Shown piece by piece: positions 6,367 to 61,889 of a stretch of 64,000 nt of DNA. The stretch is from Tubulanus polymorphus (lineage: Eukaryota; Animalia; Nemertea): contig NC_134035.1 in the NCBI RefSeq assembly GCF_964204645.1, positions 2,914,001-2,978,000 of the forward strand, read 5' to 3'. The position numbers were made by a program, and so were the translations under genes. Every line of letters begins with the position of its first letter. The stretch's first letter is position 1. The notes beneath the pieces were generated by a model. The model was not told where the DNA came from and did not search any database. It saw nothing but the letters and a program-made list of their open reading frames with translations.

Positions 6367-6401
6367 AAATTGAAATCACATTAACAGGGAGACTGACTGC
6401 G

Positions 6402-18164: not shown

Positions 18165-18230
18165 TCTGGCTCATTGGTAAGAGTAAACCAGATATAATAA
18201 TCTGTGCAGTTTCAGGTTCGATTCCTGATG
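18165..18230 (+). pseudogene. tRNA-derived remnant (SINE head or tRNA pseudogene)
   Basis: A-box-like TGGCTCATTGG and B-box GGTTCGATTCC at tRNA-like spacing; no intact cloverleaf. Confidence 0.4.
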
Positions 18231-24353: not shown

Positions 24354-24615
24354 ATGACCACCGCGCGTTGACGGTAAATGATAGCAGAGCCAGTTTATCA
24401 CGCGGTGAGTTGACATTAGGTTCAGTTGACCACCGCGCGTTGACGGTAAATGATAGCAGTGCCAGTCGATCGCGTGGTGAGTTGACAGTAGATTCAGTTG
24501 ACCACCGCGCGTTGACAGTAAATGATAGCAGAGCCAGTTTATCACGCGGTGAGTTGACATTAGGTTCAGTTGACCACCGCGCGTTGACGGTAAATGATAG
24601 CAGAGCCAGTCGATC
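24354..24615. repeat. 72-bp minisatellite, array 4 (~3.6 copies)
   Basis: Tandem units. Confidence 0.9.
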
Positions 24616-36510: not shown

Positions 36511-37499
36511 ATGTTAGATAAGAAAAAAAAAGAAAAAAAACCAAACTCCTTAAAATTGTAATAATAAAGCCTAAACTATCACTAAACCTAAACTATAAAA
36601 AAAAAAAAAGGTAGGAAGAGGGGGGCCAAGATCTCGGCACAGCGAGGCCAGGGGGGTTAGTGCACATCCTGCGCTCGCTAGGAGGGTACATGACCACCCT
36701 CCTGCAACCTCGGGAGGACCTCCTACTGCAGCCTCAGGAGGTCTTATGCCTCGTGCTACAGCCTCGCGAAATTTAAACCTCCTATTCCGTCACTTCCGAC
36801 GGAAATACGCCATTGCCAGCTGTGGAATAATGGGATGTATGTTTTGTGCGAGTTTATCTCCGGAAGGCCCGGATCTGCGGCCATCAACCCAGCACCGTAC
36901 GATTCATATCGAGATATGACTAGTAACTCCGAGAGGTAGCCCAACCATAGAAACAATGATAGCAACTAGTAAAACAGAATACAGAGTCTGACTAGTCACA
37001 AGAATACCTAGCCATGTATATACCTAGTCATGTGTACACCTAGTCATGTGTACATCCAGCCATGTGCACACCCAGCCATGCGCACACCTAGTCATGAGTA
37101 CATCCAGCCATGTGTACAACTGGTCATATGCATACTTAGTACCTGAATACATATGTACCAAGCACCTAACAGCACCTGCACCTAAAAGGATCTGCACCTG
37201 TACCTGAGAGCATCTGCACCTGTACCTAAAAGGATCTGCACCTGTACCTTATAGTATCTGCACTTGGAAAATTGACCGCAATTTTCGCAAAGAGTAATTT
37301 TTACTCAAATTGTTGAAAATTAGAAAATATTGACGAGGCGAACACGTCGAAAAAACGTTTGACACGCAAAATATTGTTTTAGAAAAAATCGGTTTAAAAA
37401 AATGCCGAGATATCGATCGACGGTTTTTCGAATAATCTGAACTCAATTGAGCTGATTATCAATTTATCGACTGATCGACTTTCAACTGACTACTACGAC

Positions 37500-38460
37500 C
37501 GAGTCACTGACTGACAAAGACTTACTGACTACTACTGATCATGACTGCTGTGATTGAGTGACTGCTACAGAGTCACAAATACTATTACTATTAATGACAA
37601 AATGACTGCTACGAGTCACTGACTACAACTTAGTGACTACTATTAACCAAAAAATGACTACTACAACTGACTTATAAAGACTTACTGACTACTACTGATC
37701 ATGACTGTTGTGATTGAGTGACTGCTACAGAGTCACAAATACTATTACTATTAATGTCAAAATGACTACTACGAGTCACTGACTACAAATTAGTGACTAC
37801 TACTAACCAAAAAATGACTACTACAACTGACTTATAAAGACTTACTGACTACTACTGATCATGACTGCTGTGATTGAGTGACTGCTACAGAGTCACCAAT
37901 ACTATTACTATTAATGACAAAATGACTACTACGAGTCACTGGCTACAAATAAGTGACTTCTATTAACCAAAAAATGACTACTACAACTGACTTATAAAGA
38001 CTTACTGACTACTACTGATCATGACTACTGTGATTGAGTGACTGCTACAGAGTCACCAATACTATTACTATTAATGACAAAATGACTACTACGAGTCACT
38101 GACAACTTAGTGACTACTACTAACCAAAAAATGACTACTACAACTGACTTATAAAGACTTACTGACTACTACTGATCATGACTGCTGTGATTGAGTGACT
38201 GCTACAGAGTCACCAATACTATTACTATTAATGACAAAATGACTACCACGAGTCACTGGCTACAAATTAGTGACTTCTATTAACCAAAAAATGACTACTA
38301 CAACTGACTTATAAAGACTTACTGACTACTACTGATCATGACTACTGTGATTGAGTGACTGCTACAGAGTCACCAATACTATTACTATTAATGACAAAAT
38401 GACTACTACGAGTCACTGACTACAAATTAGTGACTACTACTAACCAAAAAATGACTAGTA
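37500..38460. repeat. 160-bp tandem repeat built of GACTACT-like subunits (~6 copies)
   Basis: CTTACTGACT at 37521, 37681, 37841, 38001, 38158 and 38318. Confidence 0.95.
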
Positions 38461-38645
38461 TGACTGCGTAACTTGACTGAATGACTACACTACTACTGCT
38501 GATTAACTGACTACCATGACCGATGAAAAAAACTGTTTCGTTGAACTGCTGATTACCCGGATACAGGAAGCAGTTGAATCGTAAATGACCCAGTGAAGCA
38601 GTGAACAAACAAGCCTACCTCGTTACTGGATCATTTACGATTCAT

Positions 38646-39107
38646 CTACTCCCTGTACCCACGCCTAAACAAGACCGATTTTAAATCATGTAAAAGAGCC
38701 TTTGATCTATCCGAAGATAGAAGCTCCTCCCACGGTCCCACGGAACCGCGAGCCACCACCCGCACTTCGGCGCGGCATCGGTCGCTGGACAGAACTCTGT
38801 CCAGCGCCGAAACCGGGGCAGCGGCCAACGGCTCCACGGGGGCAGGAGGAACTCCTCTTACCTCCTCAACCTCCACGACCATCTCCTCTTCTACCAGTTC
38901 CGGCTCCGGCTCCGGCTCCGGGACCGGTTCAAACACCGGTTCCGGTTCCGGCTCCGGCTCCGGCACCGCCTCCACCACCTCCGGAACTGCCACGACGCCG
39001 ATCTCCTCCCCTCCGCCACCGCGTCGCTCCCCCTCGGGAGGCGCCACACCACCGCGACGAACCGCCGGACGGCGTCGTCTTCGATGCCGAGCGGTGCGCG
39101 TGCCCGT
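38646..39107 (-). CDS. Terminal coding exon 39 (Arg-rich, then acidic (EP)n region, then stop)
   Basis: Acceptor cttttttttgcag; GC-rich; TGTRTARHRRRRRPAV...EPEPEPEP...LFRRGYRE-TAG; phase 0 matches the exon-38 donor. Confidence 0.85.
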   Translation of the reverse strand, partial: TGTRTARHRRRRRPAVRRGGVAPPEGERRGGGGEEIGVVAVPEVVEAVPEPEPEPEPVFEPVPEPEPEPELVEEEMVVEVEEVRGVPPAPVEPLAAAPVSALDRVLSSDRCRAEVRVVARGSVGPWEELLSSDRSKALLHDLKSVLFRRGYRE

Positions 39108-40626
39108 CTGCAAAAAAAAGAAAACATTCATTTACTAAATGATCGGTTGAAAAGTGATTTTTTACAGAAAATTTTCGGATCAGTAACCGAGCTGAAATAA
39201 TGAAACAATTGATTACATATAAACAAAGAGATAAATCGTCGCGATCTGGGAAACAATATTCTAAAGGGTTAGAAAATAAAGCAAAAAAAAAAATGACGAT
39301 GGCTCGCTGAAAATGAAAGTATTATTAAAGAAAAGATATTATAAGTGATTCATAAAAACTGTTCGTGTGAGAGAAATTCATTCGAAATCAAAACTGAGAG
39401 AAATATAAAAAAAACAGTTAATGTTGAGATGATGCTTACCTCCCGTAACTCCCCCTCCCACAGCCGCCCGTCCACGCGACGGGACCACCTCTGTGCAAGA
39501 GGGTGCGGCTGCCGGAGGGTCCGCTGCCTAGGGCGCCTATCCGGGGAGGCAGCAGCTGGAACGGGGTCTGCCAGCTGGTCATCCAAGACAGGACCAAGGT
39601 TCAAGTGAAAGAGGTCTATGGCCTCTTTCACGTCCTCCGGACCATCCTCCACCGTCTCAATTAATATTGGTTCCACTGTAAAATATAAAATAGAAAGAAA
39701 TACATTAACAATCAGGAGAAACAATTAATATATCAAGGGCAGATCCAGTCCCCCGCCTTTAATATCTTGAGGTGCCCTCGAGATATTTTAGGAATTTCTT
39801 TTTCCATTTTATAAAGAAATATCAAGTATTCCCTCATGATGGCTATCGAATAGCCTCGGGCAACAAAATTTCAAAATTTTCTGGGGAGAAACACTTAAGA
39901 CCCCTTTCATCCCTTCACGAGTGCTCATGTGCCCTTCAGTAAACCTTCCAAAAATCCTGGCTCAGCCCTTGTAGATTTACAGTGAACCCAGTGTAGCTAG
40001 TAATCTCATTAATACAAAATGGTTGACTTTCCACTTGAAGTGTGATTGGTTGCCAATAATTTGTGACATCATCATGCAGCAGAATGTGGGATGCGGAAAG
40101 AATACAATATCAGTCTCCATGAGTGACATTGATGGGCTGGTTGAGAGTTTAGGGTTGTCGGGACAGGGTTACTACAGTACAGCACAGAAGTAACTAAACA
40201 TTGTATCATTGTATTGTACAGTCACATGAACAAATAAATAGGTGTTATACCATCAGCGAACCATCACTTAACCATCAGGTGAACCCCTGCCATAACCGCA
40301 AACCATGATTCATGATGATTTGGAAATAATTCTAAATGGTAGGCATGGAAACTTGTTAAAATTGATCTAGTTCATAAAATGCAGTCTATTTTCTCTGATT
40401 CAAATCAGTTCAAGAAGACTTTTTTGGCAATGCTTCAATTAACAGCGTAAAATGGATGCAAAAACGATGGTTTATTCAGACCGCGCGGTATCACTGGTCG
40501 TATTTAAACCAAATTTGATGCGGTATGTGTTTAAAACAATGAGCGACATATGGTATATGGAGTATATTACTTCATGCCTTGCCAAACACTAATTACTTAC
40601 TCACCAAATCACTCAATTAACCTGTT

Positions 40627-40698
<72 letters not shown>

Positions 40699-43600
40699 TA
40701 TATATAATTAATCCGTTTTTAGTCAATATCTCACACCTGACGATGATCTCTAGGGTGAGATCGAAACGTCGTGTTCTTATGTTTTAGATTGTTTCCATAA
40801 ATAAATTCTCGATTTTAGAATTCTTTTAATTTGTAAATAAAGTTGGTTTTTTATCTTATTAACCCTTTCAGTGCTGACTGATCAATACCCTATAGTGCTG
40901 GAGATAATTTGAAAATTTTGAAAAATTCCACCCAAGTGTGTTGAATAACGGGAATAGCACTACAGTGCGTCTACACCACGGCGCGGTGTATCGTTAGTTA
41001 CTGATATTTCACGATGTGTCTGAAAATGGTTGACGCCGCACGAAAATAAATAGGCTTTTGTTATACAGAATTCTGTAAGGGGAACAATGATCTCTTTTTT
41101 CTTTTTCAATTATTTCTAGGATGTACCGTCAATAAGACCCGGGGCTTGATGAGGCAGTGGCTGCGTTACTGTGGCAAGCGAGGATCAGCTAGTGGTTACT
41201 CCTCAATAACCGTGCTTCAATTTCGTCGACACTTCCCGATTGAACTGTAGCCGACTCATCGCTTTATCAATACGCGAAAGTTCACGATTGGTAGAACACT
41301 TTATCCGTGTTGACGCGATGAGGAGAGAATCCCACAATGATAATAAAAAGTCCGAAAATGAAACTTCATAATAATCAGGAATTATTCCTGAAGATGACTA
41401 TTAGGATATAGTCGAAACGTTGAAATAAACTACTATCTCGAAGTTTCATTTTTGGACTTTTTATTATCATGATGTGATCAGTGGAAAGAGAGAGGAGAGA
41501 GTATAAATGCAAAAAGTTGTACTTACATCGCGTCAAAAAATTAAGTAGATACCGCGGATCCGCGGCGATATTCCGCCTTATCTCTTCGATGACTGTAAAA
41601 TAAATAAATGAGAAAAATTATTAGTATTTCATTAAATCATGGACGATCAATAGGAGTTTTACGACGTGGACAATACAGTCAAAGTCTGTTATACTGCCGC
41701 CATACTCCATCAGGAGTGACATGATTATGGGTATTTTAACGTGCTGGATCCAGTTCCACAAATGAGTTAACTCTGAACTCAGGATCCAGTTCCACACATG
41801 AGTTAGATTTAACTCTGAACTCAGGATCCAGTTCTACAGTTACGAGTTAAAGTTAACTCTGAACTCGGGATCCAGGACCCAGTTCCACAGTTGTGAGTTA
41901 CAGTTAACTAAATTAATCATCAGTTATCAACAGTAAGGCGCTCAGTAACATCTTTCATATTTCTGTTCAAATCAGAGACAAATTCAGTATTTCTTGTCAT
42001 AAAATAGTAACAAATACCGAAAATCAGTAACAGTTTGGGCAGCTCTGCTAAAAATGTCTGGCTACAAACGGACATATCTAAATAGGATCATGAATATGTG
42101 TAGACTTACCATTTTCCGTCGCATCGACGGCGGGGGCGGCAGCTGCATTTTCTGCCTATAATATAATAACAATCATGATGTTAAGGTTTAAGAAAACAAC
42201 AAAAAAATTTGTCAAAATTCATGCAGTTTTTACTAGCGTTTCGATAACACGAATCGTAATTAGAGAGATAATGGGGCCAATTCCCTATATGAAATCAAAA
42301 GCTGAAAGAGAGCCTGCAAACAAGAGCATTTCAAGAGCTCAACTAATGCAGCGCAAAGTTTCCAAACAAACCAAGAAATCACAATTTCAAAGTTTTTCTT
42401 GATTTCTCTTTATAGTACATTCGGCGTTCATGTATAGCAGTTCCGGTCCATTGGATAATCCTTTCATCATCGCTTTAATGAAATTTGAACAGTAGGGAAC
42501 TGGCACGCCAGCTATCCCTTCAGATGGCACCGCTTAGGTATGTGAGACAATCTAATGGGACAGAAAGTGAACAAGAAGTGCGACAAGTCGTCGTCAAATT
42601 AGAGCATTGATATTTTTTCGCGCATCTCTTATTGTATTAATAGTGAGCACTGGATCATATCATTACGGTTAAAAATACCCGACTATTTGATATCTCTAAT
42701 TTGAGTAGTTTTCACCTGAATATATGACAGCGCAAGGGCTCTAATAACTTACTCTTCGGCGTCTCAGCCGCGGCGATCGCCTCAGCGGCGGTATCTCGTC
42801 TCTCTGGAAAAAACAAAACAATCAACAGTGATTAAATCATCGAAACATTAAATGATTTCTTACTGATTGGAGAATTCGGTATCAGAATAGCTCGGTAGGA
42901 CCAGAGAGATTCAGGGATTCTATATGTGAATAGCTCGGTAGGACCAGAGATTCAGGGATTCTACATGTGAATAGCTCAGTAGGACCAGAGAGATTCAGGG
43001 ATTCTGTATGTCTTCCTGTTCATTGACGTGTCAGTAATGATCAACACATTCAGTGTATTTGATGCATTATAATTATTTTCACTTATAGTTCAAACTTACA
43101 TCAGCTTGCGGCGGCGGCGGCGGCGTCGCAGGTGTTTCAGTCTAAAAAGTAAAAAAACGATATTTCCATTGGTTATAAAAACATGAAAATGATTCATTTC
43201 AATTTAATATAATAAAACTTGGTTCCACAGTTCAGGACCCAGTCCCACAGTTACAGAACCTGGCTCCGCAGTTCTGGACCCAGTCCCACAGTTACAGAAC
43301 CTGGCTCCGCAGTTCTGGACCCAGTTCCACAGTTTGAAGTTATGATCTAGTAAAGAGATACCGATCCTAGTTTTCCAGCCAATGATATTCAGTTAGTTCC
43401 GTGCGATGGTCATCAAGCCGATTGTCATCAATTTCTAGATCTCTCCCTGTCCCGCCGCCCCAGAATTAGGTATTTTTACTTTTTTTTGGTTTCGATTTTT
43501 TGGTGCCACGAGATCCAAAGCAGAAGAATTCTACACTATTTTAATTCTTTTTCCGATGCAGATTTTGAAAACAATAAAATATCCTCATAATCATTGGTGA

Positions 43601-46600
43601 ACCACAATGATAATAATCTACATGACTTAAAACAGGAAATAATGGTCAAGTCTTCATGAATAACCATGAACTGTGGGTGCAGAGACGCGAAAATCACTTG
43701 AAAAGTGGTTTGAACGCTCGGACAACTGGAAACATTTAAAAATTTGTCAGTTTTTACCATAGTTTATCATTGTTACAATGGTGGTTGTCACCTATGTTGA
43801 GGATTTACCGCTAGGGGCAACATTGAAACCCGGTCTATGAAATCGGGCCAAGGTTGAGGATTTACCCCTAGGAGAAAATGATGTGGTCTATAAAACCCTG
43901 CCCAGATTATCAATAAACTTATTTGAAATTAGCTTCACTTAAAATGATTTGACTCAAATCAAACTTACTTTAACCGGTCCGACGCGTGCCCGTTTAGGGC
44001 TAACGGGGTCCTATAAAATAAAAACAAGTTGAAATCAACATCCAGAATTTTCAAACATATTTCTGAAGGAAATCTCAATTTCAGATTATCTTAATAATCT
44101 TTGGTGAGCCACGAAAATGATAATCTACACAACTAAAAAATGTAAATGAATAACCATTAACTGCGGGTGCAGAAACGACAACACCACTTGCAAAAAGGGC
44201 TTCAACAAACTCTCCACAATCACAAGAGGCACGTACTACCATCGCGAAAATCTTGTGCCTTTTTTTCCATGCCCAAAATAGATGTTCAAGCCACTTGGAA
44301 AGTGGTTTTTTTCACATCGACAAACTCTCGTCGCAATCACAAATCATACTTGTCGTAAGCTTAAACTTTCACAAGATCCCGTCGGCAGGCGGACAGACGG
44401 AGAGACAGGCGGACAGACGGAGAGACAGGCGGACAGACGGAGAGACAGGCGGACAGACGGAGAGACAGGCGGACAGACGAACGGACTGTAAAATGATTTG
44501 ATGAAATTCAAACTCACCGATGCCGGTACCTCGAGCTTCCTCTTCTATAAAATAAAAAATCAACTTTAGTTTAACGACGTCAACAAAAATTCAGACATAT
44601 TTCATCTGCAGTCGTTTGTGTTCAACTGTAAATTCAATAGAAATGTTCACAATATTTACCGGCACATTCACGCACGTGTGGAATTCATTTCTCTACATAA
44701 AAAGAAAAACAAGAGCTCAATTTAGCATTTATGAAAATCAGAATAAATTATCTCGAATCTCGCATTTTTTTAATAGCTTGGTTGACAGGGTAGACTATTG
44801 AAATATCATTTCGGAAAATTTAAAAAAAAAAGAACTCGCTCAGCGCGATAAACACAGTTTTTGAAGGAAGAGGGAACGATCGATAGGGCAATATACATAT
44901 GTCCAAAACAATGATCCTTGGAAAGTTCGAATTCTGCACACAAATGTGATCAAAAAAAGAATAAACGTGCGTTTTTCAATTTTTTCATCATTCAAGCCGG
45001 GATTCTCATTCGGCGAAGGTGAAAAACTTTTTTGCTCGTTTTCCACTGAATTTGTTCCACGGATGGGAGTAAAAAAAAATTCTACTTTTGACTTTTCTTC
45101 AAATTTCGGGAGGCGGTTCCCGTAAACCAAGCTATTTAAGAAAAAGCCTCATCTGGTGAACCATCAAAAATAGTTATTATTACGTTATAGGTTGTTACTA
45201 ATGATCGGATTTATGAGAACCACAACGGTATAGTGTACATTATGGAATAAAGTTCAAGTTTTTGTCAGTAGATGGCAGGCAGGTGGTATTTATAAAGTCA
45301 CTGGGTGTCAACATGTGTAACTGAAATTGTCTATTGTAAACTTACGTCAATTTGCACAATACGCGCGATTTCCGATTCCTAGAAATGTAAAGAAAAAAAA
45401 TTCTGAAATCAAGTTTTGAATAACTATACCACGGATGAAAGATTCCATGATCGAAATTCTTAGTTGACCCTCGATTTAGAGACTATTTTGAGGATAATTG
45501 AACCGATGGATGCTGCGTGACATGATTTCAATATTCTACTAACTCGGTCTGAAGAATATTCACATCGATACAAAACTGTGACCGAGCCGCAACTTTTAAA
45601 CATTCTTAGTTTCACTTAAAAACATTGCTTCACGCTATTATCAATGCCAATTTTACGAATAATATGAACTCGGTAAGATGAATATTCGCATCGATACAAA
45701 CTGTGACCGAGTGCGACTACTTTCAAACACTCTTTAGATATAACTGGCTTCAGCTGTGATTAATTTAGGACCGAAGATACTACTCTATATAGCTTAATCA
45801 GTAGCGGATCCAAACTAGATTCCATTGTATTCCGGAATATAGTCAGAATAACATTTTTTTTTTTAAAGTAACTCGATCCAACAGAATGTCCCAGATACAA
45901 GGAAATTAGAACATATTTCAAAATTTTTATTGGTTAGGACCCCTAAACTGCGGCAGCTGCAGCGGTCAGGCAAAAAATATCTTTAAGGAATATAGCCAAA
46001 TTCACCAGCCCCCCACGGAACTGCCCCTAAGTAATGACATTTTAGAATTGAACCCATGATACAATATAGCGGCTGCAGCGCTGCAAACAGATCGGTCACA
46101 ATTACCAGTGTTTATGTTTTCCAACAACAAATAAGCTAGCAAAAACTAGGTGCCTTTAGCCTACGAGCAAAATTGGTCGTAGCTTTAGCCAAGTTTGACC
46201 TTGGTGGAGATATGCTATGGGATCTCTTAGAACATGGATATTTCAGCAGGAAAATCAATATCAGATTATAATAATCTGGTGAACTACGAAAATAATTATC
46301 TTTTACAACTTACGATAATGGTAGGAGCCTCGGGCTCCGGCGGCGGCGGCTCTGGGAAATCATCATTCTAGTAATCAAAATAACATGAAATATCATGAAA
46401 AATTCTAGCTAACCCTAAAAGCGAGTATATATGGAGCCACCCACTAATGAAAGGGATGGCTCCAAATTCACTGAGAACGAGTAGGCGATCAAAAGGATAT
46501 TTACCCAAAGGTCGTCGAATAAATTGATGTCCTATAAAAAAGAATACAAAAAATTTATTAAGATAAAATGTACGTATGTTTTTGGTAAATGACACTTACT

Positions 46601-49600
46601 GATCACAAGTGACATATGGTCACGATAGTATCACAATTGCTTGCCAGTGAGGCTAGGCGTTCACCAGAGCCAAGTTTCATAGATGTTGGGAAAAAATAAT
46701 ACCAGCTGGGATCATTTCGAAATTTTTCAGTTATTACCAAGGTTTTCATTATGAAGTTGTCACCTATGTTGAAGATTTACCTATCGGCAACCAACAGGGC
46801 TGCCAACCTCTGAAAAGTGCTATCAGTAACAAATTGCAATATGAAAATAAATGTTCAAATCAATCAGTAATCAACAGTAAGACCCTCAGTTAGATCTTTC
46901 ATACTTCTCATATGCATCGAACAAATCAAATCAGTATTTCTTGTCATAAAAGAGTAACAAATACCGAAAATCAGGAACAGTTGGCAACTCTGGGTAACAT
47001 TGATATCCGGTTTACAAAATCGGGCTCAGGTTGAAGAAATACCTCTAGGGTATTATTGATATACAGTCTATGAAACAGGGCTAAGGTTATCAATATTTAA
47101 CATCGATATCGAAAATGATTTAATGAAATTGAAACTTACCTCGTCACGCGGAATCTTCGGCGGGCTTACGGGTTGCTGTAAAATATTTAAAAAAAGTTGA
47201 AATCAACATTCAGAATTTTGATACACATTTCTTTAGTAAATCTCAACTTTCAGATAGTCATAATCTATATTGAACCACAATGATAATAATCTACACGACT
47301 TAAAACAGGAAATAATGGTCAAGTCTTCATGAATAACCATAAGCTGTGGGTGCAGAGACGTGAACATCACCGACCGACCGACCGACCGACCGACCGACCG
47401 ACCGACCGACCGACCGACCGACCGACCGACCGACCGACCGACCGACCGACCGACCGACCGACCGACCGACCGAGGGTAGACCACCCTGATTTTGGTAAAA
47501 ATCTATCAAATTCCCCAATCTTTCTGATTCAATGAGATTGTCAGGTTGTCTAGGACATTAGCACCCTTGAATTGCTGAACAATGCCTATACCACTGGCGA
47601 TTGTGAGATCCTATCTATGGACGAAAAGACAGATTGAAAGTAATAACGGGAGAACGATTCGATAGAATTCAAACTGACCTCGTCGACGGATCGGCGTCGC
47701 TTTCTGGTGACCTATAAAATAAACGAGCAACATTTAGATTTAATCATTTTTCATTTTCAAGTTCATGATCACGTGTAGTTCGAACATGGAAAGCATTTCA
47801 TGAGAGAAATTGAGTGGAGCCGATTTAAGACTGCGAGGAAAGATATCAGTAATGTCAGTGATGAGCGAAAACTAAAAACATGGCCAAAACTTACTTCTTT
47901 CGTTGTTGTTATTGTTTGTTTGCTCTGATGCCATGAAAGAAAAAAAGAGAATTAATTTTAGTTTTGTTATTTTATGTTCAGTAGCACACGTAGGTATCAA
48001 TATACGTAATAAATGAGTTCTAAGCGACGGATGCCTCGTTATAGATATTGTTTTGATTCTGTATCGTTATTTAATAAAACGAACAGGAGAATTTTTATGA
48101 CTTTGTTCCCGGTATGAAATACATTGGCTGTCAGATAGAAATGAACACGACAGAAAATCCATGATACAGAAAAATGCTGACTTACTTCCTTCGGTGCTGT
48201 TGCTGTTGGTTTCTGTTGCAATAAAAGAAAGAAAATTCAGTAAGTTTTTTTCTTATATTTCATATTCAGCAGGAAACGTTAATAAACACAGTAGACATAA
48301 AAACTGGACAGGTTTATATAGATATCTGTATCTGAAAAATGATTTTGATGTCATTAGCATAAATATCTTACATTAAGTTAAGTGCAATTCCTGAGTGCTA
48401 ATGGATTAAAGTTGATGTTAAGACAGGATCATCTACGAGGGAATACACGGGAAACGAATGACGCTTAATTATAAAATTGAAACTTACTCGTACAGGAATG
48501 GCCGCTGCCGCTGCCGGAGCTGTTGCTGTTGGTTTCTGTTGCAATAAAAGAAAGAAAATTCAGTAAGTTTTTTTTTTTATATTTCATATTCAGCAGCAAA
48601 CGTTAAACACAGAAGACACAAAAACTGGGCAGGTTTTATATCTGTGTCTGGAAATCGATGAAAATCGCAAAAAATAATTGCCCATAGGCCAAGAGGTTTA
48701 CCACAGCCTTATGAAATGCTTATATCAGGTAACGAAATAGGGATGTAAAGTGTAAGGTGCGAGAAGTTTCGGTCTCGGTTAGAGAAATGAACGTAATCAT
48801 AAAATCGTAATTATAAAATAGAAACTTACTCGTGCAGGAACGGCCGCTGCTACTGCAGCTGTTGTTGTTGGTTTCTGCTGCAATAAAAGAAAGAAAATTC
48901 AGTTTTGTTTTAAATTTCATATTCAGCAGCAAACGTTAATAAACACAGTAGACATAAAAACTGGACAGGTTTATATAGATATCTGTATCTGAAAAATGAT
49001 TTTGATGTCATTAGCATAAATTTCTTACATTAAGTTAAAATCAAACATGCCACATGGTAAATCATTTTGAAGGGAATCGAACTCAGATTAAATTCTGTAA
49101 CTTTTGACAAAATTCTGATGAAAAGCTCTTTAAGAATCGATTGTTATATTATTTGATGATCATTGGTTTACATATATCTGTTGGTTAATATTATCAATGA
49201 ACTTGTGGTCCAGTCGCCAATCCCACGCGAAAAATGATTTGGACGCTTGATAATCAGACTTATTTAATATTCAACGCCCCCCGGTGAAAATATACAAAAA
49301 CCGTTGACCTTGAAACTCGTCACTATCATAGAAAATGTCGCAAGTGAACAGATGGAGAGATGAACAGACGGACAAAAAAGTCCATGATACAGAAAACTTC
49401 AAACTTACAAATGCTGCTGCTGTTTTTGCTGCTGCTGCTGCTGCTGCTTTCGTCTGCTATAAAAGAAAAGAGAATTCATGAATTTCTTGCGTTATTTCGT
49501 ATTCAGTTGCAAACATTAAACATAGATCATATCTTGATTAAAACAAAAGAAACAAAAAACAAGTTTTTAACCTGTGTTTGGAAAAACTCTGATATTTATG

Positions 49601-52600: not shown

Positions 52601-55600
52601 CCCCGAGGGGTGCAGGGGTAGCGGACCCTTTTCAAGATAGCTAACTTCTCAAGTTAACATGTAATCAATGTTCAAGATTTTTCTTGCCAATTTGACTTAA
52701 GTCCTTTAACTCTAAGTGATTCATTTAGAGCCTGGAAAACGTCTCTAAAGCCTCAAATTTAAAAAAAAGTTTTTTGGGGGAGGCCCCCCAAACACCAGAC
52801 ATTGTGCTTGGATGCTGGATTGATGCTTATTCGAACCCCGTATGAAAATTCCTGGGGACGCCTATGAGAACCTGTTTTAAATAACGCACAGGTATGAATG
52901 TATATGAACATCGTTGTAATTCCAGTTTTTACGGCATCAAAAAAGTTGCGATATTTGCTTCGCTATTAACACTCCCTCCCGTTAGATAATACAGTCGAAT
53001 TACCAAAAAATTGCATCAAAAGATTGAATCGTGAGAGCATCTCAAAAACGACATTTCAATAAATTGTCGTTAAGCCCTTGGGTTGTTTATCCTATACCTG
53101 AAATTTAAGGAGTTAGCAAATAAACTGGTCGCTGAGCTATAATTAATTGGAGAGGCGCAGTGGCCAAGTGGACTAAGCCGCCGGTCACTGGCTCCAGGGT
53201 TTATAGGTTCAAACCCTTGTGACGACAGAGTTTCTTAGTCGAATGTTTTTCTCTGGTCTCTTAAACAACGAATCCACTTATAATGCCATGTGTGGCGCTT
53301 AGCGTTTTGAGGCTCTTAAAAAGAGCTATAATTCGTGCAAATTAGGTTCAAACCCTTGTGACGACAGAGTTTCTTAGTCGAATGTTTTTCTCTGGTCTCT
53401 TAAACAACGAATCCACTTATAATGCCATGTGTGGCGCTTAGCGTTTTGAGGCTCTTAAAAAGAGCTATAATTCGTGCAAATTAGATCATTTTTCAAAAAA
53501 TTGTTACCAATCTTTTCTAAGGGTCAGTCATACCCTAGAAACCTTTCAATTAACATTAAGCTCATCTCTTACAGTTTTCACTCTATGGAGCTCGAAAGTT
53601 TCTATCGATTTTCCTACTTTTATGTTACCAATGATGGGCACTCTGAGTGTTTTTTTTTATCAAATCACCCGTGAGTGCTGAAAGAGTTATGCCCTTGGAT
53701 GATATATACTGGGAGGTGGGTTGATCCGACGTGGCTCCTTAACTCATTTCCACCCAAACACGTACTCGTATGTTCGTTATCTCCCATCACATTCCTGCCA
53801 AAACCGTACTGGCAAAATGGTTGGCTTGTTTCTTAACTCAAAACCGTACCGATACGGTTGGCTTGTTTCTTAACTCAAAACCGTACCGATACGGTTTGCT
53901 TGATTCTAAACTCAAAACCGTACCGATACGGTTGGCTTGATTCTTAACTCAAAACCGTACCGATACGGTTGGCTTGGTTCTTAACTCTAACGATAGATGG
54001 CGAATTCATCGCACAACACCAGTTAGTTTAATGCCTTTTACTACTAAACAAACTCATCAGTTGTTCTATACAGTGTGCGAGTGACATCATCTATTGAAAT
54101 GGGGGCTGAACACGCATGAACGAGCATATATTCTGCAAAATACTCCCTCTGCACTGGTTATCGCTACAGATTTTATCACTCTTAGAAGAAATGCCGCTTA
54201 TTTTACATGAAAATGCAAGACCAGATCAAAGATATAAAACAAATTTGATGAGAAGATATCTCTTCTTGTTTTTGTTTTATGAATCTCTGAAAAACACGGA
54301 AATCCTGGCAAAACGCAGCATTGCCTGAAAAATAGGCGTGGCAGGCAAAGAGTTACGAATGTTCTTCATTTATATTCCCGCTTTTTTTCTCATATACCCT
54401 AATTATTCACTCGCCTTAAGCCCGCCGCACCGGCATAACATTTGTTTCGCCAAAACAGAAAACACACTTTTCAGAACACGTTTTGCCCACAAACAATAAA
54501 ATGTTCAACGGACACGACATTTTGCTGTTCGGCGTTTTGTGTTTTGCCTTCCCCGCACACGGCATAACAAAAAACAGGCTTTAACCTCATGTACTAACAC
54601 AATACAAATCATTTTCATCTCAAGTCTCAACATATTACAATTGATAACCAGCCAACAGAACGGATACATCTAAACTTACTTCGATGTCTGGGGACGCCAA
54701 CGTGGACCTCGTTCCAGTGTGATGCTGTAAAAGAATAAAATTCATTAATACAAAGCCTAGGAATTGGTAAATCGACCATGGAAAACATCATCTTGTTTTG
54801 CAGAAAATCTACCAGGCGAAAGAAAAAAAACGAGTCGGAATCTATTCAATCGTTGCGCTTATGAAAATCAGCACCAGTTTATGGGCATAAAAATGTGCGC
54901 CAAGAATTGAATTTGATGACCAATACAAATAAACCAAAAATAGACAGGTTTGATATCTGTAACCGAATTGGATTTAGAGCCGCCTTTTTTCAGGTCAAAA
55001 ACGATAAGTTACAAAGGTAATCGAACTCCGATTAAATTCTGTAACTTTGATGATAATTCTGACGAAAAACTCATAAGAATCGGTTGTTTCAAGGTAACAG
55101 AAGAATTAATACTTACTGCCTTTGCTGCTGTTTGTTTACGCTGATGACATGAAAGAAAAAAAGAGAATTCCTTTTAGTTTTGTTATTTCACGTTCACACA
55201 TTAAATACAGTAAATATAAATACATCAATAAGAGATACATAAAATATATGCACATATATCCGTGAGCAAATGCTTCCAGATTTTACTGTGTGTGCTAATA
55301 TTATATAAAAAAAACTTGATATATAAAATAATTCTAAGTGACGGGAATTTATTTCATTGAAAGCAGGATTATTTTCATGACTTTGTTCCTGGTATGAAAT
55401 ATACAATGAAAATCAGAAACAAATCATCGTCTGTCAGAAAGAAATAAACACCACAGAAATTCCATGATACAGAAAACTTCTCACTTACTTCTGGTGCTGT
55501 TGTTGTTCTTGTCGTCGTCGAATTCTGTCGCAATAAAAAAAAAAGAGAATTCATGAATTTCTTGCATTATTTCATATTCAGTAGCAAACATTAATAAACA

Positions 55601-58600
55601 CAGGAGATCATATTATAATTAAAACAAAAGACAAGTTTTATATCTGTATTCGGGAAAAACCTCGATATTTCAGTATTCGTTTGTTTTAGGGTTTTATTTA
55701 AACAATATAAAGTCCATTAAACAGAAAAATTCAAACTTACTGTATTCGTCGCTGTTTGTCTGTTCTGTTGCAATAAAAGAAAAGAGAATTCATTAATTTC
55801 TTGCATTAAAACTCTGATCTCTGTAACTTTGATATTTCTGTATTCGTTTGTTTTACAGTTTGATTCAAACGATATAGAGTCCATTAAACAGAAAAATTCA
55901 AACTTCTGTTGTCGTTGCTGCTGCTGCTACAGCAGCAGCAAACTGTCGCGATGAAAGAAAAGTAATTAATTGCGTTGTTATTTCATATTGAGTAGCACAC
56001 ATTTAACAGAGGTCATGATTAAAACGAATACCAGACAGGTTTAATATCTGGAAAAAGATTTCATCAGAGTAAACTTGTTACAATGAGAGAAAACCAAAAA
56101 CACCAAGCGATAAATCAGTTTGATAATTCCTTTCATCGGGATATTTGCACTTTAAAAATGACAATTGTAATTATTATCATTACTATTATCATTATTACTA
56201 CGAGTTTGATGATAATTATGAACTATATGCGCAAATATAAGCGTATGTGTAAGTAAGCGCGCACACAAACTGAAGACGAAATCAGTAACAACTTGCTTAA
56301 AGAGTTATGAAGTTTCAATGACTCAGCAAAAATGGTAGATATCATATTCCACCGAGGAGATTAATAGAAAACTTACAAAATGAATTTCCGCTTCTACTGT
56401 TATCTAGAAAAGAGAATTAACATTCATATCTATAAAAATCATTCATTAAATGATCAATGAATCTAAGCGCCAGTTTTATGGAGACCAATGTTTACTTTAG
56501 TAAATCTGGGTTAACTTGATTAAAAGTGAATTCAGTTAGCTGAGCACGGGTTAAAGATAATACCAGTCTAACCGGCTTCAGAGGACCAGGTTAAACAAAA
56601 CAGGTTTATATAAAATGATATCATAAAATCTAAACTTACTGGCGGCGGAATTTCCTCCAGGACTTCTGGCTGTTAGAAAAGAACAATAAATTCACATTCA
56701 GGTCAAAAACGATAGGTTACGAAGGGAATCGAACTCCGACTAAATTCTGTAACTTTGATGATAATTCTGACGAAAAACTCATAAGAATCGGTTGTTTCAA
56801 GGTAACAGAAGAATTAATACTTACTGCCTTTGCTGCTGTTTGTTTGCGCTGATGATATGAAAGAAAAAAAGAGAATTCATATTAGTTTTGTTATTTCACG
56901 TTCACACGTTAAATACAGTAAATATAAATACATCAATAAAAGAGATACATAAAATATATGCACATATATCCGTGAGCAAATGTTTCCAGATTTTACTGTG
57001 TGCTAATGTTATATAAAAAAAACTTGATATATAAAATAATTCTAAGTGACGGGAATTTATTTCATTGAAAGCAGGATTATTTTCATGACTTTGTTCCCGG
57101 TATGAAATATACGATGAAAATCACAAACAAATCATCGTCTGTCAGAAAGAAATAAACACCACAGAAATTCCATGATACAGAAAACTTCTCACTTACTTCT
57201 GGTGCTGTTGTTCTTGTCGTCGTCGAATTCTGTCGCAATAAAAAAAAGAGAATCCATGAATTTCTTGCATTATTTCATATTCAGTAGCAAACATTAAACA
57301 CAGGAGATCATATTATAATTAAAACAAGAGACAAGTTTTATACCTGTATTTGGAAAAACCCTGATATTTCAGTATTCGTTTGTTTTAGGGTTTTATTTAA
57401 ACAATATAAAGTCCATTAAACAGAAAAATTCAAACTTACTGTATTCGTTGCTGTTTGTCTGTTCTGTTGCAATAAAAGAAAAGAGAATTCATTAATTTCT
57501 TGCATTAAAACTCTGATCTCTGTAACTTTGATATTTCTGTATTCGTTTGTTTTACAGTTTGATTCAAACGATAGAGTCCATGAAACAGAAAAATTCAAAC
57601 TTCTGTTGTCGTTGCTGCTGCTGCTGCTGCAGCAGCAAACTGTCGCGATGAAAGAAAAGTAATTAATTGCGTTGTTATTTCATATTGAGTAGCACACATT
57701 TAACAGAGATCATGATTAAAACGAATACCAGACAGGTTTAATATCTGGAAAAAGATTTCATCAGAGTAAACTTGTTACAATGAGAGAAAACCAAAAACAC
57801 CAAGCGATAAATCAGTTTGATAATTCCTTTCATCGGGATATTTGCACTTTAAAAATGACAATTGTAATTATTATCATTACTATTATCATTATTACTACGA
57901 GTTTGATGATAATTATGAACTATATGCGCAAATATAAGCGTATGTGTAAGTGAGCGCGCACACAAACTGAAGACGAAATCAGTAACAACTTGCTTAAAGA
58001 GTTATGAAGTTTCAATGACTCTCAGCAAAAATGGTAGATATCATATTCCACCGAGGAAATTAATAGAAAACTTACAAAATGAATTTCCGCTTCTACTGTT
58101 ATCTAGAAAAGAGAATTAACATTCATATCTATAAAATTCATTCATTAAATGATCAATGAATCTAAGCGCCAGTTTTATGGAGACCAATGTTTACTTTAAT
58201 AAATCTGGGTTAACTTGATTAAAAGTGAATTCAGTTAACAAAGCACGGGTTAAACATAATACCAGTCTAACCGGCTTCAGAGGACCAGGTTAAACAAAAC
58301 AGGTTTACATAAAATGATATCATAAAATCTAAACTTACTGGCGGCGGAATTTCCTCCAGGACTTCTGGCTGTTAGAAAAGAACAATAACATTCACATTCA
58401 GGTCAAAAACGATAAGTTATGAAGGGAATCGAACTCCGATTAAATTCTGTAACTTTGATGATAATTCTGTTGAAAAACTCATAAGAATCGGTTGTTTCAA
58501 GGTAACAGAAGAATTAATACTTACTGCCTTTGCTGCTGTTTGTTTACGCTGATGACATGAAAGAAAAAAAGAGAATTCATTTTAGTTTTGTTATTTCACG

Positions 58601-59322
58601 TTCACACGTTAAATACAGTAAATATTAATACATCAATAAAAGAGATACATAAAATATATGCACATATATCCGTGAGCAAATGTTTCCAGATTTGACTGTG
58701 TGCGCTAATATTATATTAAAAAAAACTTGATTATAAAATAATTCTAAGTGACGGGAATTTATTTCATTGAAAGCAGGATTATTTTCATGACTTTGTTCCC
58801 GGTATGAAATATACGATGAAAATCACAAACAAATCATCGTCTGTAAGAAAGAAATAAACACGACTAGAAATTCCATGATACAGAAAACTTCTCACTTACT
58901 TCTGATGCTGTTGTTGTTGTCATCGTCGCTGAATTCTGTCGCAATAAAAAAAAAGAAGAGAATTCATGAATTTCTTGCATTATTTCATATTCAGTAGCAA
59001 ACATTAAACACAGGAGATCATATTATAATTAAAACAAGAGACAAGTTTTATATCTGTATTTGGAAAAACCCTGATATTTCAGTATTCGTTTGTTTTAGGG
59101 TTTTATTTAAACAATATAAAGTCCATTAAACAGAAAAATTCAAACTTACTGTATTCGTCGCTGTTTGTCTGTTCTGTTGCAATAAAAGAAAAGAGAATTC
59201 ATTAATTTCTTGCATTAAAACTCTGATCTCTGTAACTTTGATATTTCTGTATTTGTTTGTTTTACAGTTTGATTCAAACGATATAGAGTCCATGAAACAG
59301 AAAAATTCAAACTTCTGTTGTC

Positions 59323-59357
<35 letters not shown>

Positions 59358-60611
59358 AGCAGCAAACTGTCGCGATGAAAGAATAGTAATTAATTGCGTT
59401 GTTATTTCATATTGAGTAGCACACATTTAACAGAGATCATTATTAAAACGAATACCAGACAGGTTTAATATCTGGAAAAAGATTTCATCAGAGTAAACTT
59501 GTTACAATGAGCGAAAACCAAAAACACCACGCGATAAATCAGTTTGATAATTCCTTTTATCGGGATATTTGCACTTTAAAAATGACAATTGTAATTATCA
59601 TCATTACTATTATCGTTATTACTACGAGTTTGATGATAATTATGAACTACATGCGCAAATATAAGCGTATGTGTAAGTTAGCGCGCGCACAAACTGAAGA
59701 CGAATCAGTTACAACTTGCTTAAAGAGTTATGAAGTTTCAATGACTCTCAGCGAAAATGGTAGATATCATATTCCACCGAGGAGATTAATAGAAAACTTA
59801 CAAAATGAATTTCCGCTTCTACTGTTATCTAGAAAAGAGAATTAACATTCATATCTATAAAAATCATTCATTAAATGATCAATGAATCTAAGCGCCAGTT
59901 TTATGGAGACCAATGTTTACTTTAATAAATCTGGGTTAACTTGATTAAAAGTGAATTCAGTTAGCTGAGCACGGGTTAAAGATAATATCAGTCTAACCGG
60001 CTTCAGAGGACCAGGTTAAACAAAACAGGTTTATATAAAATGATATCATAAAATCTAAACTTACTGGCGGCGGAATTTCCTCCAGGACTTCTGGCTGTTA
60101 GAAAAGAACAATAACATTCACATTCATTAGAATTATTTGAAAAATAAGCATCTGGGGGCGGTTGCACGTCAATCGAGACTTAAGTCCGAAAGTGGTCTTA
60201 AATCTTAAGACTGGTCTTAAGTTGTTAGATTGGCTATAGAACCAAGTTGGTCTTAGACTGATCTTAAGTGTAAGCCCTGACTATGGAACCGGCCCCAGAA
60301 AATGTTTCAGTTTTGAATATTGATTGTAACATCAAATGATAACCGGTCCCGGGTTCAATTCCACATTTAATTCATTATTCCATCTGTATCCTGGATGGTT
60401 AGTGAGGTGGAGTGGACGGTATCTTTGATGGGTTGGTATGAACGCCAACACAAGGGGGAGTGGGGGCGGGGGATTTAAATCTAGCTCCGATATATCGATG
60501 ACGTAGTGCACATCTACTCAGGTAAGTATACTAGGTATCAATGTAGATACAGACATATTATTGGAACAAAAAAAAATGAATACTTACTATCTGCTTTCGT
60601 TTTGGAGCCAT
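38646..60611 (-). CDS. Spliced microexon-rich gene, 39 coding exons, ~699-aa uncharacterised, mostly disordered, probably nuclear protein
   Basis: Exons in transcript order, each bounded by pyrimidine-rich ..AG and GT: 60588-60611 MAPKRKQI; 60065-60094 PEVLEEIPPP; 59802-59828 ITVEAEIHF; 59150-59173 NRQTATNT; 58900-58935 NSATMTTTTASE; 58525-58548 RKQTAAKA; 58339-58368; 58076-58102; 57440-57463; 57197-57229 NSTTTRTTAPE; 56825-56848; 56640-56669; 56377-56403; 55741-55764; 55489-55524; 55117-55140; 54680-54724 HHTGTRSTLASPDIE; 51078-51158; 50591-50710; 49813-49839 TLKEKRKME; 49686-49712 RERKKKALE; 49409-49453 TKAAAAAAAKTAAAF; 48830-48874 KPTTTAAVAAAVPAR; 48488-48535 KPTATAPAAAAAIPVR; 48186-48212 KPTATAPKE; 47895-47924 SKQTITTTKE; 47679-47711 VTRKRRRSVDE; 47140-47175 QPVSPPKIPRDE; 46314-46367 NDDFPEPPPPEPEAPTII; 45346-45378 ESEIARIVQID; 44660-44692 RNEFHTCVNVP; 44518-44544 KRKLEVPAS; 43969-44010 DPVSPKRARVGPVK; 43100-43141 TETPATPPPPPQAD; 42753-42803 RDEIPPLRRSPRLRRRR; 42110-42155 AENAAAAPAVDATEN+1nt; 41527-41592 VIEEIRRNIAADPRYLLNFLTR+1nt; 39440-39675; 38646-39107 (stop). 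Joined frame has no internal stop and all phases match. Manual call, so exons may have been missed. Confidence 0.85.
39440..39675 (-). CDS. Coding exon 38 (236 nt, phase 1 to phase 0)
   Basis: Acceptor ttttatattttacag, donor GAG|gtaagc; EPILIETVEDGPEDVKEAIDLFHLNL...WEGELRE. Confidence 0.85.
40630..40693. repeat. (TA)n microsatellite
   Basis: Direct observation. Confidence 0.95.
40733..40774 (+). ncRNA. Minimal type I hammerhead ribozyme motif (Penelope-like retroelement type)
   Basis: ACAC-CTGACGA-T-GATCTC[tagggt]GAGATC-GAAAC-GTC-GTGT: core CUGANGA/GAAA, 6-bp stem II, 4-bp stem I, palindromic ACGU in place of stem III. Confidence 0.65.
40863..41020. mobile_element. Partial piggyBac-type MITE (one end)
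   Basis: TTAA|CCCTTTCAGTGCTGACTGATCAATA...; reverse complement of 62612-62748. Confidence 0.7.
41337..41470 (+). mobile_element. Penelope-like remnant: 31-bp inverted arms enclosing a hammerhead motif (41382-41428)
   Basis: Arms 41337-41367 and 41440-41470 (one mismatch). Inside: CTGAAGA-T-GACTAT[taggat]ATAGTC-GAAAC-GTT. The paralogous intron at ~33650 diverges exactly where the arm begins. Confidence 0.6.
44386..44480. repeat. 20-bp minisatellite GGCGGACAGACGGAGAGACA
   Basis: ~4.5 copies, intronic. Confidence 0.9.
46795..46992. mobile_element. Small MITE (hAT-like termini)
   Basis: CAGGGCTGCCAAC...GTTGGCAACTCTG; the paralogous intron at ~43815 lacks it (empty site). Confidence 0.65.
47370..47472. 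repeat. (CCGA)n microsatellite
   Basis: ~25 perfect units. Confidence 0.95.
50591..51158 (-). CDS. Exons 18-19 (81 + 120 nt): the only predicted globular segment, possibly KH-like
   Basis: EIETVFELKLGTSLRASFQKTLTRKHP|QVIVDTPRVHAIVVVRGPKVAVDNCYEYAHELRDRLVAQE; canonical AG/GT ends, both phase 0. The fold assignment is inference only. Confidence 0.75.
51614..52105. mobile_element. MITE with 14-bp TIRs
   Basis: CAGAGTTGCCACTT / AAGTGGCAACACTG (13/14); TATATT on both flanks. Confidence 0.65.
52592..52866. mobile_element. MITE with perfect 13-bp TIRs
   Basis: CATAGGCGTCCCC / GGGGACGCCTATG; no clear TSD. Confidence 0.65.
53152..53484 (+). mobile_element. tRNA-derived SINE-like element with a 139-bp tandem duplication
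   Basis: A-box TGGCCAAGTGG, B-box GGTTCAAACCC; 53204-53342 repeated at 53343-53481. Confidence 0.6.
53800..53987. repeat. 37-bp minisatellite with internal palindrome AACCGTAccgaTACGGTT
   Basis: ~4.5 copies. Confidence 0.85.
54990..60123. repeat. Three tandem ~1.7-kb copies, each carrying five microexons plus one donor-mutated exon
   Basis: Equivalent exons at 55117/56825/58525 (spacing 1708 and 1700); introns near-identical. Confidence 0.95.
60152..60298. mobile_element. Short palindromic MITE
   Basis: CTGGGGGCGGTTGCA...TGGAACCGGCCCCAG with internal CTTAAG repeats. Confidence 0.55.
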
Positions 60612-61889
60612 ATTTCTAGAAAACAAAATAGAGACATCATAAACATTTAAGCGACGACACTTATCATCATTTGAAAATTGGCATATCGATTGTAAACAAA
60701 TCCGCCAGATGACAGATCTGTAATCAGTCAGGGCTATGGAGGGTAGCCCTTGGGTTTTAATAGAAACAATTTCAGAGACAACACATTAACATCTGGCCCC
60801 AGTGTTACCGCACTAAAGCAGTATGCGTGGTTACTGCAGTTACATGGATTAAAAATTTCTAAGTATTTCATGGGTGATTTTTCAATTTTCCAAAGTGGAA
60901 CTGAACCGATATCATCATGCTTCAGTTAACATTTTAGCGGTGACTGGTTGATACAGATGATTCTCACGGGAATTCGCTGACGAAAGTTGCACTTGGCAAA
61001 TACACAAAATATAAATGAATTACCCAAATATTTCCTTGATTTTAGGAAAATTTCCGAAATTTATTTTTGGAAATATTTCCAAACTAGGAATTATCATTTC
61101 AAAATTCCATCAGGCCATACATGCAGTTCAACAGTTTTGGACGCAATGGGATACCGGCAAGGCTAATGAATGAATAAGACCCTAAAGATATTTTCCATTG
61201 AAGACATTTTGAGGGCACCAACGATTCCCTACCATTTTTCATTACCAGTTGAAATTTGGTTTATTTCAGAATGTTTTAAATCTAAAAAACTGATCAAGAA
61301 ATGTGGAACTGGGGGGTCCAGAACAGTGGAACTGGATCCTGATAGCCGCTTTAAATGAAATCTTTTTGACATTTTTGTTGAAGAAATTAAATTTGTGTAG
61401 GGTGCCAAAAAACCCAGATCAGTTATCCAAAGTAATACACACTAAATTTTTTATTTTCGTGTTTAAACTTTTCTCAACTTGGTCTCAACAGGACCAGTGA
61501 AACTGTATAGTCCAGATAAACCATCGTTTCTATATCCATCTGACACTGTTTTCAAAGGATTGTCAAAAAATCGTCTTTAACTGATTTGAATCAGAGAAGA
61601 GACTCCATTTTATGAACTAAATAAATTTTAACAATATGTTCCATGCCTACCATTTTAAATCATTTTCAAATCATCAAAAATCATATTTCAGAGGCATGGA
61701 AACACAAGAAACATTTTGTTAGAATTTAAAAAATGGCTGATCTTTTGTAATTGCAACATGAGAAAATGAAGACTTTTTGGCAATTCTTCAATATGGTGTA
61801 AAGTGGATGTAAATACAACTGTTTATTCAGACTGCACATTTTCACTCTGGTCGTATCGAGACCAAATTGAGGTGTTTTCAAAAGTTTAA

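Follow-up and report, generated by a model that had tools for sequence, protein, structure and literature searches.

A predicted gene built of phase-0 microexons and present in about eleven young copies in the nemertean Tubulanus polymorphus

Genes in which a long run of exons shorter than 70 nucleotides (nt), each divisible by 3, lies between larger terminal exons have been described as micro-exon genes (MEGs) in Schistosoma, Echinococcus and Hymenolepis. The structural filter for such genes asks for at least seven exons, a share of 50% or more for micro-exons (<70 nt and divisible by 3) and a run of at least four of these (PMC7653826). The published class consists of secreted or membrane-anchored proteins with a signal peptide, is restricted to platyhelminths and shows high dN/dS (PMC4350168). 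In a second group of genes, which encode disordered proteins, internal tandem duplication has built the coding sequence out of symmetric exons (Schad, Kalmar and Tompa 2013, PMC3632108). Here we describe a predicted gene that resembles both groups, located on the minus strand of a 64,000-nt stretch of the genome of the nemertean Tubulanus polymorphus (contig NC_134035.1, positions 2,914,001 to 2,978,000; hereafter the window, whose first letter is position 1). The locus is very probably a protein-coding gene that has remained unannotated. The explanation that we favor, with moderate confidence, is that it represents a real, lineage-specific coding gene in about 11 young copies, and that its product is a disordered, nuclear and possibly nucleosome-binding protein.

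The gene model was rebuilt independently by reading the minus strand and scanning it mechanically for an AG, an open frame and a GT(A/G)AG donor. Its 40 exons join into a coding sequence of 2172 nt, encoding 723 amino acids (aa) with no internal stop; the ATG lies at 60611 and the TAG at 38648–38646. Exons 1–20 and 23–37 are 24–54 nt in size, and the larger exons measure 81, 120, 66, 236 and 462 nt. A first-pass annotation of the window, made from the sequence alone, had proposed 39 exons and 699 aa; the array and its stop-free frame stand, and the two counts have to be replaced, mostly because of an 81-nt phase-0 exon (51158–51078) that is present in all paralogues. The number of exons of 24–51 nt is the same in both models (33, now of 40). 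Likewise, the statement that internal exons 2–35 are phase 0 and multiples of three holds and extends by one exon, as every one of exons 2–36 has these properties. The phase changes thereafter, with exons 37, 38 and 39 (46, 66 and 236 nt) showing phases 0-1, 1-1 and 1-0, respectively, ahead of the 462-nt exon 40. GTAAGT, previously named as the most frequent donor, is found at 32 of the 39 donor sites; the remaining seven are GTTTGA (three sites), GTAATG, GTAAGA, GTGAGT and GTAAGC.

Two comparisons address how often such structures arise by chance. On the gene strand, 28 GTAAGT donors are preceded by an in-frame open exon of 15–60 nt, an AG and a pyrimidine tract, versus 0, 0 and 1 such structures in the controls, which were the opposite strand and both strands of the other 38.6 kb of the window. 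The second comparison was blind to reading frame, each GTAAGT being matched to the upstream AG with the best pyrimidine tract. Exon length was then divisible by 3 in 28 of 30 cases, or in 18 of 20 when a triplicated cassette of exons, described below, was counted once.

By its structure, the predicted gene falls within the MEG filter: 35 of its 40 exons are shorter than 70 nt and divisible by 3, the longest unbroken run being exons 1–20, with a second run of 14 in exons 23–36. Its biology is different, as hydropathy reveals no signal-peptide-like N-terminus, the host is a nemertean and pN/pS is 0.20 outside exons 25–29. A palaeonemertean origin agrees with an intronless HSP70 from this assembly, which shows 94% identity to a T. 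polymorphus protein and no more than 81% to any other; COX1 was not found in the assembly. The MEG-like character claimed in the first-pass annotation thus applies to the architecture and does not extend to membership of the published class. MEGs and the predicted gene also have in common that they are multi-copy, lie in repeat-rich DNA and are hard for gene finders. Unlike MEGs, the predicted gene specifies a product of ~720 aa with nuclear-type motifs, has a dN/dS of ~0.2 in most exons and shares no sequence similarity with them. If transcripts confirm the model, it would constitute a clear MEG-type architecture outside Platyhelminthes, and one encoding a non-secreted protein, which would make the architecture separable from a function in host–parasite interaction.

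The first-pass annotation had described a single hidden gene. Instead, we found about 11 near-identical copies, carried on duplicated segments of 33 kb or more. Exons 22 and 39 each occur in 11 full copies in the genome, and exon 40 in nine copies at 97–100% identity. Gene copies are located on contigs C11, C9 and C8, every one of them within 3.5 Mb of a contig end. For the comparisons below we used six copies, namely the window locus and five fetched paralogues; positions 36.2–64 kb of the window, introns included, align to the other five at 94–99%. The duplicated unit spans 33 kb or more, as a diverged block of exons ~7 kb downstream travels with every copy. Because the open reading frames (ORFs) of the window are satellite only, with no transposon protein genes among them, we read these units as segmental duplications within repeat-rich DNA at chromosome ends. 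The possibility of a giant transposon was rejected, as the 64-kb window contains tandem-repeat ORFs only and none for a transposase, reverse transcriptase or integrase.

All 40 exons are present in the five other copies, where their open frames are kept, and the AG/GT splice sites are conserved in all copies with two acceptor exceptions. The copies do differ in the number of modules. One paralogue carries two of the six-exon cassettes and the others three, one is without one poly-Ala exon, copies C, D and F have an additional exon of the 26/27 type, and several Thr/Ala exons differ by whole codons. Differences in exon length between copies are multiples of 3, with a single exception in copy D, an observation to which we give little weight since it partly reflects the mechanical behavior of trinucleotide repeats. 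If transcripts confirm the gene, its paralogues would provide a clean example of how phase-0 microexon units vary a disordered protein between young copies without loss of frame.

Substitutions among the six copies reveal frame-specific purifying selection, which is evidence for translation in the predicted frame. Summed over pairs, pN/pS of the non-repetitive exons equals 0.20 when they are read in that frame, versus 0.97 and 1.76 when they are read in the two alternative sense frames. For ten microexons alone, the corresponding values are 0.14 versus 1.12 and 3.08. Pairwise dN/dS ranges from 0.06 to 0.34 across the 464 codons outside exons 25–29. When each site is counted once, variable sites are distributed over codon positions 1, 2 and 3 as 18/11/34 (P = 6e-4). 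The same bias toward third positions is seen in exons 21–22 (4/1/11) and in the four conserved cassette exon types (2/2/8; 15 cassettes from the six gene copies). As the substitutions postdate the duplications, protein-level selection has acted on the copies themselves. Exons 25–29 behave differently: their pN/pS is 0.87, and 14.6% of their non-CpG sites are variable, with no codon-position bias. Slippage of GCA/ACA repeats, relaxed selection and diversifying selection are all candidate causes of this hypervariability.

In genes for disordered proteins built of symmetric exons, one exon encodes one short disordered module and the array grows in tandem, and the predicted gene is organized likewise. 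Collagen genes with their 54-nt exons, the PEVK exons of titin and the treacle repeats are further examples of such genes. The locus agrees with this group in its exon phases, its tandem duplications and the disorder of its product, the latter as judged from composition and a low-confidence fold. It is an extreme case, however, as it strings together 36 consecutive phase-0 exons, most of 8–16 codons. It further differs from the group in that its modules are heterogeneous and in that the whole gene occurs in ~11 copies, between which module number varies.

The history of the array can be traced at two scales. At the larger one, a 1.7-kb cassette of six microexons is present as three tandem units (55.0–60.1 kb) that are 97–99% identical. 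Cassette copy 1 (58525–60094) contains exons 2–7 (60094–60065, 59828–59802, 59366–59313, 59173–59150, 58935–58900 and 58548–58525), of which exon 4 (59366–59313) encodes poly-Ala and has a weak GTTTGA donor. Cassette copy 2 (56825–58368), repeated with a period of ~1.7 kb, contains exons 8–13 (58368–58339, 58102–58076, 57639–57601, 57463–57440, 57229–57197 and 56848–56825), and the third tandem unit (55117–56669) contains exons 14–19 (56669–56640, 56403–56377, 55942–55904, 55764–55741, 55524–55489 and 55140–55117). At the smaller scale, an upstream intron module of ~60 nt, ending in a pyrimidine tract and AG, is common to at least 10 exon types (4–7 and 24–29), and the first 60–100 nt of the downstream intron are also common to several of these. 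Such shared flanks indicate that the unit duplicated again and again as the array grew was a microexon together with the adjoining ends of its two introns.

In the mechanism that we favor, the small unit duplicated in tandem comprised the 3' end of an intron, including a branch-site-like element, and a microexon with its GTAAGT consensus donor, and the six-exon cassette of 1.7 kb was duplicated as well, more recently. Since each such unit is in phase 0 and divisible by 3, modules are gained and lost between copies at the DNA level while the frame is preserved. The sole family-conserved module is carried by the four larger 3' exons, which follow the 36 consecutive phase-0 exons.

Outside the cassettes, exon 1 (60588–60615) encodes MAPKRKQI, ends at a GTAAGT donor and is identical in five paralogues. 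Only 4 nt separate its acceptor AG from the ATG (60611), so that an untranslated 5' exon must be located upstream; no ATG exon of the required phase with a GT(A/G)AG donor was found in the 3.4 kb that remain up to the window end. Downstream of the cassettes, exon 20 (54680–54724, 45 nt) is followed by exons 21 (51158–51078, 81 nt) and 22 (50710–50591, 120 nt), which encode the sole hydrophobic stretch in the middle of the protein and are possibly folded. Exons 23 (49839–49813) and 24 (49712–49686) are Lys/Arg/Glu-rich and invariant in the six copies. The next five, exons 25–29 (49456–49409, 48877–48830, 48535–48488, 48212–48186 and 47924–47895), are Thr/Ala/Pro/Lys-rich modules that vary strongly among paralogues in both sequence and length. 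Exons 30 (47175–47140) and 31 (46367–46314) encode an SPPK motif and an acidic, Pro-rich module, respectively, and precede exon 32 (45378–45346).

Toward the 3' end, exon 33 (44544–44518) is followed by exon 34 (44010–43969), which carries SPKR, and by the Pro-rich exon 35 (43100–43141), the length of which ranges from 39 to 45 nt across paralogues. Exon 36 (42753–42803, 51 nt) encodes RRSPRL and then a run of Arg residues, a feature to which we return below. Exons 37 (42155–42110, 46 nt) and 38 (41592–41527, 66 nt) lead to the two last exons. Exon 39 (39440–39675, 236 nt) is conserved in its 3' part at 46–57% in a distant gene family, with the same exon end. Exon 40 (38646–39107, 462 nt including the TAG) encodes a run of Arg residues and a Pro-Glu repeat, as well as a C-terminal module of ~55 aa, for which identity to the distant family is 43–45%.

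This distant family comprises ~50 copies in arrays spaced 30–45 kb (C6, 0.65–1.75 Mb; C3, 0.42–1.33 Mb; C8, 15.07–16.31 Mb; loci L011–L013). It shares with the predicted gene the last two exons only, at 43–57% identity and with the same exon boundary, which indicates that the terminal module is older than the microexon array. Exon 22 has no counterpart in it and is restricted to the 11-copy family. A further locus, L010 (C8:13951038–13954253), contains clustered fragments of exons 39 and 40, arranged in tandem and in some cases interrupted by stop codons, which we read as pseudogenic debris beside the C8 paralogue. An intronless join of exons 39 and 40 at this locus was rejected as evidence for splicing, as 24 codons are missing at the junction, indicating a deletion.

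Public collections were searched exon by exon, and the joined 723-aa frame was used locally only, for the frame check, composition, shuffles and one tblastn search against loci L010–L013. In Pfam, the five exons of at least 20 aa returned one sub-threshold low-complexity match only. An exhaustive HMMER profile search with the C-terminal module against 1.84 billion representative proteins revealed no relative; its sole match, to a repetitive bacterial FN3 protein, was rejected as spurious, being the sum of 13 weak stretches. No relative emerged either from a word-indexed protein search with exon 40, which was dominated by Pro-Glu repeat words, and scores in the ESM Atlas (0.86–0.87) were in the chance range. 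Sequence searches of the PDB gave nothing significant, and Rfam searches with the window and three loci gave no match. We read the gene as lineage-specific. The earlier claim that it had been missed by annotation fits the finding that no public protein carries its C-terminal domain. With about 11 genes and perhaps 50 distant ones apparently missing from public protein sets, the family calls for caution regarding spiralian annotation.

The predicted protein has a mass of 79 kDa and a pI of 6.55, and 72% of its residues are disorder-promoting. Judged from this composition and from the low-confidence fold of its C-terminus, it is probably disordered for the most part. A hydropathy check detected no signal-peptide-like N-terminus (no 10-aa window within the first 30 residues exceeds a hydropathy of 0.97), in agreement with the non-secreted N-terminus described in the first-pass annotation. 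There is also no transmembrane-grade segment, as the best 19-aa Kyte–Doolittle window reaches 1.52 and coincides with a poly-Ala tract (residues 25–43) that occurs three times in the protein. The nuclear-type motifs reported earlier are present in the joined protein: MAPKRK, KRKL, RHRRRRR, SPPK, SPKR and SPDR were all recovered, and only RKRRR was not, the nearest sequence being RLRRRR. In addition, exons 33 and 34 together encode KRK, an 11-residue spacer and KRARV, which in our own reading fits the pattern of a classical bipartite nuclear localization signal (NLS). The N-terminal KRK, this bipartite NLS, the SPKK-type sites and the absent signal peptide make a nuclear location plausible.

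A more specific nuclear role is suggested by exon 36. The RRS-x-RL core of HMGN proteins and of the tardigrade protein Dsup inserts its arginines into the H2A–H2B acidic patch of the nucleosome, as visualized by cryo-EM, and the set of acidic-patch RRS-x-RL proteins is expected to be larger (PMC12487698). Exon 36 encodes PPLRRSPRL followed by the Arg run, and the R-R-S-x-R-L pattern occurs once in the protein. When the residues of the protein are shuffled, the pattern arises in 0.125% of cases. RRSPRL is invariant in the six copies, and a diverged copy of exon 36 (33251–33328) keeps it despite ~7 synonymous versus 1–2 replacement changes. Compared with RRSARLSA in HMGN and PPRRSSRLT in Dsup, the motif has the same core, R-R-S-x-R-L, and is likewise preceded by Pro. 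HMGN and Dsup are disordered nuclear proteins, as the predicted protein appears to be from its sequence, and they have no homology to it outside the motif. HMGN proteins are ~100 aa long and limited to vertebrates and Dsup to tardigrades, whereas the predicted protein has ~720 aa and belongs to a nemertean. By analogy, the protein may contact nucleosomes via the RRSPRL microexon, as HMGN and Dsup use RRS(A/S)RL on the acidic patch, and we regard this possible nucleosome binding as a candidate lead. If transcripts confirm the gene, its RRSPRL microexon would be an added candidate in the small set of proteins that apply the HMGN/Dsup motif to the acidic patch.

The array would lend itself to a different use if, as in MEGs, its exons were skipped in many combinations, each gene copy giving rise to a pool of nuclear disordered protein variants. 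We consider this doubtful, and it is nevertheless the alternative that survives best. Each of exons 2–36 can be removed without a change of frame, and the structural MEG definition applies (PMC7653826). The donor is a weak GTTTGA in three exon types, and a frameshift is tolerated by one paralogue in an exon of this kind, which would be expected of an exon that is often skipped. Double acceptors of the NAGNAG type, 3 nt apart, are present at exons 25 (49456/49453), 26 (48877/48874) and 33 (44544/44541), where they could add or remove one residue. On the other hand, 32 of the 39 donors match the full U1 consensus and pyrimidine tracts are good, which favors constitutive recognition, individual microexons are under purifying selection, and the variation actually seen is genomic, as paralogues differ in how many modules they contain. 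With splice sites that are uniformly strong, combinatorial skipping is somewhat disfavored. Since donors are nearly uniform in their consensus and selection has acted on individual microexons, both features point to microexons that would mostly be spliced in efficiently rather than skipped freely.

Splice sites of this kind also invite comparison with the neuronal microexons that depend on SRRM3/4 (eMIC), most of which have a UGC between the pyrimidine tract and the AG (10.1101/2024.09.17.613571). Both have strong 5' splice sites, TGC precedes the AG at some acceptors of the predicted gene, and a branch-site-like element lies ~45–55 nt upstream of several of its microexons. SRRM3/4 microexons, however, are single, regulated and embedded in ordinary genes, whereas those described here form an array. 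An SRRM4-type UGC as a general feature of the locus was rejected, as TGC is found before the AG at 6 of 28 distinct acceptors, which are related by duplication.

A broader version of the skipping proposal, which we rate as somewhat less likely again, holds that the copies are amplified Dsup/HMGN-like nucleosome binders diversified by cassette gain and loss and by exon skipping at the same time, representing an independent MEG-type system outside flatworms, which would serve a chromatin protein instead of a secreted one.

Several observations weigh against our favored explanation of a working gene for a nuclear, nucleosome-binding protein. The nuclear and nucleosome-binding readings draw on short motifs that were picked post hoc, the exon-36 motif has Pro at its variable position where the known binders have Ala or Ser, and the C-terminal module folds at low confidence only (AlphaFold2 pLDDT 58). 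Three sequencing runs cover the locus; in these, introns are evenly covered and no GT..AG joints occur at the predicted sites, so that they are DNA runs. Apparent variants in them, such as a 6-nt insertion at 42127, correspond to differences among paralogues and were not counted as polymorphism. A 2015 run with the same species label, guessed to be RNA, had no reads on 38562–44560, an interval that includes 700 nt of large exons, which is a weak negative and not proof of absence. Neither AATAAA nor ATTAAA was found in the 2.1 kb downstream of the stop, and the locus lies among satellites and high-copy repeats. In copy D (C11, ~0.46 Mb; L020–L022), the first poly-Ala exon measures 55 nt, a length that would break the frame. 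It is one of 16 poly-Ala exons, belongs to the type with the weak GTTTGA donor and is the sole frame-breaker in the six copies, so that either this exon type is commonly skipped or the copy is damaged. Lastly, overall variability is 6.1% in exons, not below the 4.7% of introns.

Much of this would suit an explanation in which the copies are silent or decaying relics of a gene that once functioned and was amplified along with repeat-rich DNA around it, and retain exon-like signals only because the duplications are young. The satellite- and repeat-rich setting near contig ends, the polyadenylation signal not found downstream, the lack of reads from the possible RNA run and the frameshift in copy D are all in line with it, as are scrambled, stop-containing fragments of the last exons near several copies. 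We nonetheless hold it to be unlikely, and a little more so than the amplified-binder proposal. Changes that followed the duplications show a preference for synonymous sites solely when read in the predicted frame, every exon is open in the six copies with nearly all splice sites kept, and exonic CpG sites vary at under half the intronic rate (8.7% versus 19.8%).

The CpG comparison also bears on the high overall variability of exons. Exons have a G+C content of 60% versus 37% in introns and therefore hold more of the hypermutable CpG sites, whereas non-CpG sites are variable at 3.4% in introns and 3.3% in the non-repetitive exons. The idea that exons diverge faster than introns was accordingly rejected; for non-repetitive exons it is an effect of CpG content, and exons 25–29 alone are truly hypervariable. 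Within introns, CpG sites are ~6 times more variable than other sites (six-copy alignment, 38649–54724), which points to germline methylation of cytosines in the region.

Least probable is a mis-joined model, in which exons 20 and 21, separated by a 3.5-kb intron, belong to two different genes or an upstream coding exon, possibly with a signal peptide, was left unseen: the frame is open through the 4 nt between the acceptor and the ATG of exon 1, the distant family has only the last two exons in common and exon 22 is restricted to the 11-copy family, but phase 0 is unbroken across 36 upstream exons, no Met-initiated exon lies near exon 21, the 3.4 kb upstream lack a suitable ATG exon at a GT(A/G)AG donor, and every copy contains the duplicated unit in its entirety.

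The remainder of the window contains further pieces related to the gene as well as repeats. Diverged copies of exons 39 (3' half), 37 (part), 34, 36 and 38, together with intron flanks, are located on the plus strand at 31738–33667, reordered and open. They are 82–97% identical to the gene over the aligned parts, and the block adjoins every paralogue ~7 kb downstream; it could represent captured exons or part of a second gene. Beside it, at 33888–34063, the 176 nt that lie directly upstream of exon 1 (60829–61004) recur at 84% identity, and this repeated segment may be a 5' untranslated exon or a piece of the promoter. A 160-nt satellite of ~6 copies (37465–38561) starts ~85 nt past the stop codon (~190 nt according to Tandem Repeats Finder, which places it at 37506–38457). 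Three intronic segments (40562–41561, 41762–41961 and 43162–43361) show a depth of 100–1000 times that of their neighbors in the three DNA runs and are very high-copy short repeats, probably of a MITE-like type. Long tandem repeats, which give rise to many mutually overlapping, spurious ORFs of 130–526 aa with repetitive peptide units, occupy 16100–24800 and 1800–9600, where no recognizable gene was seen.

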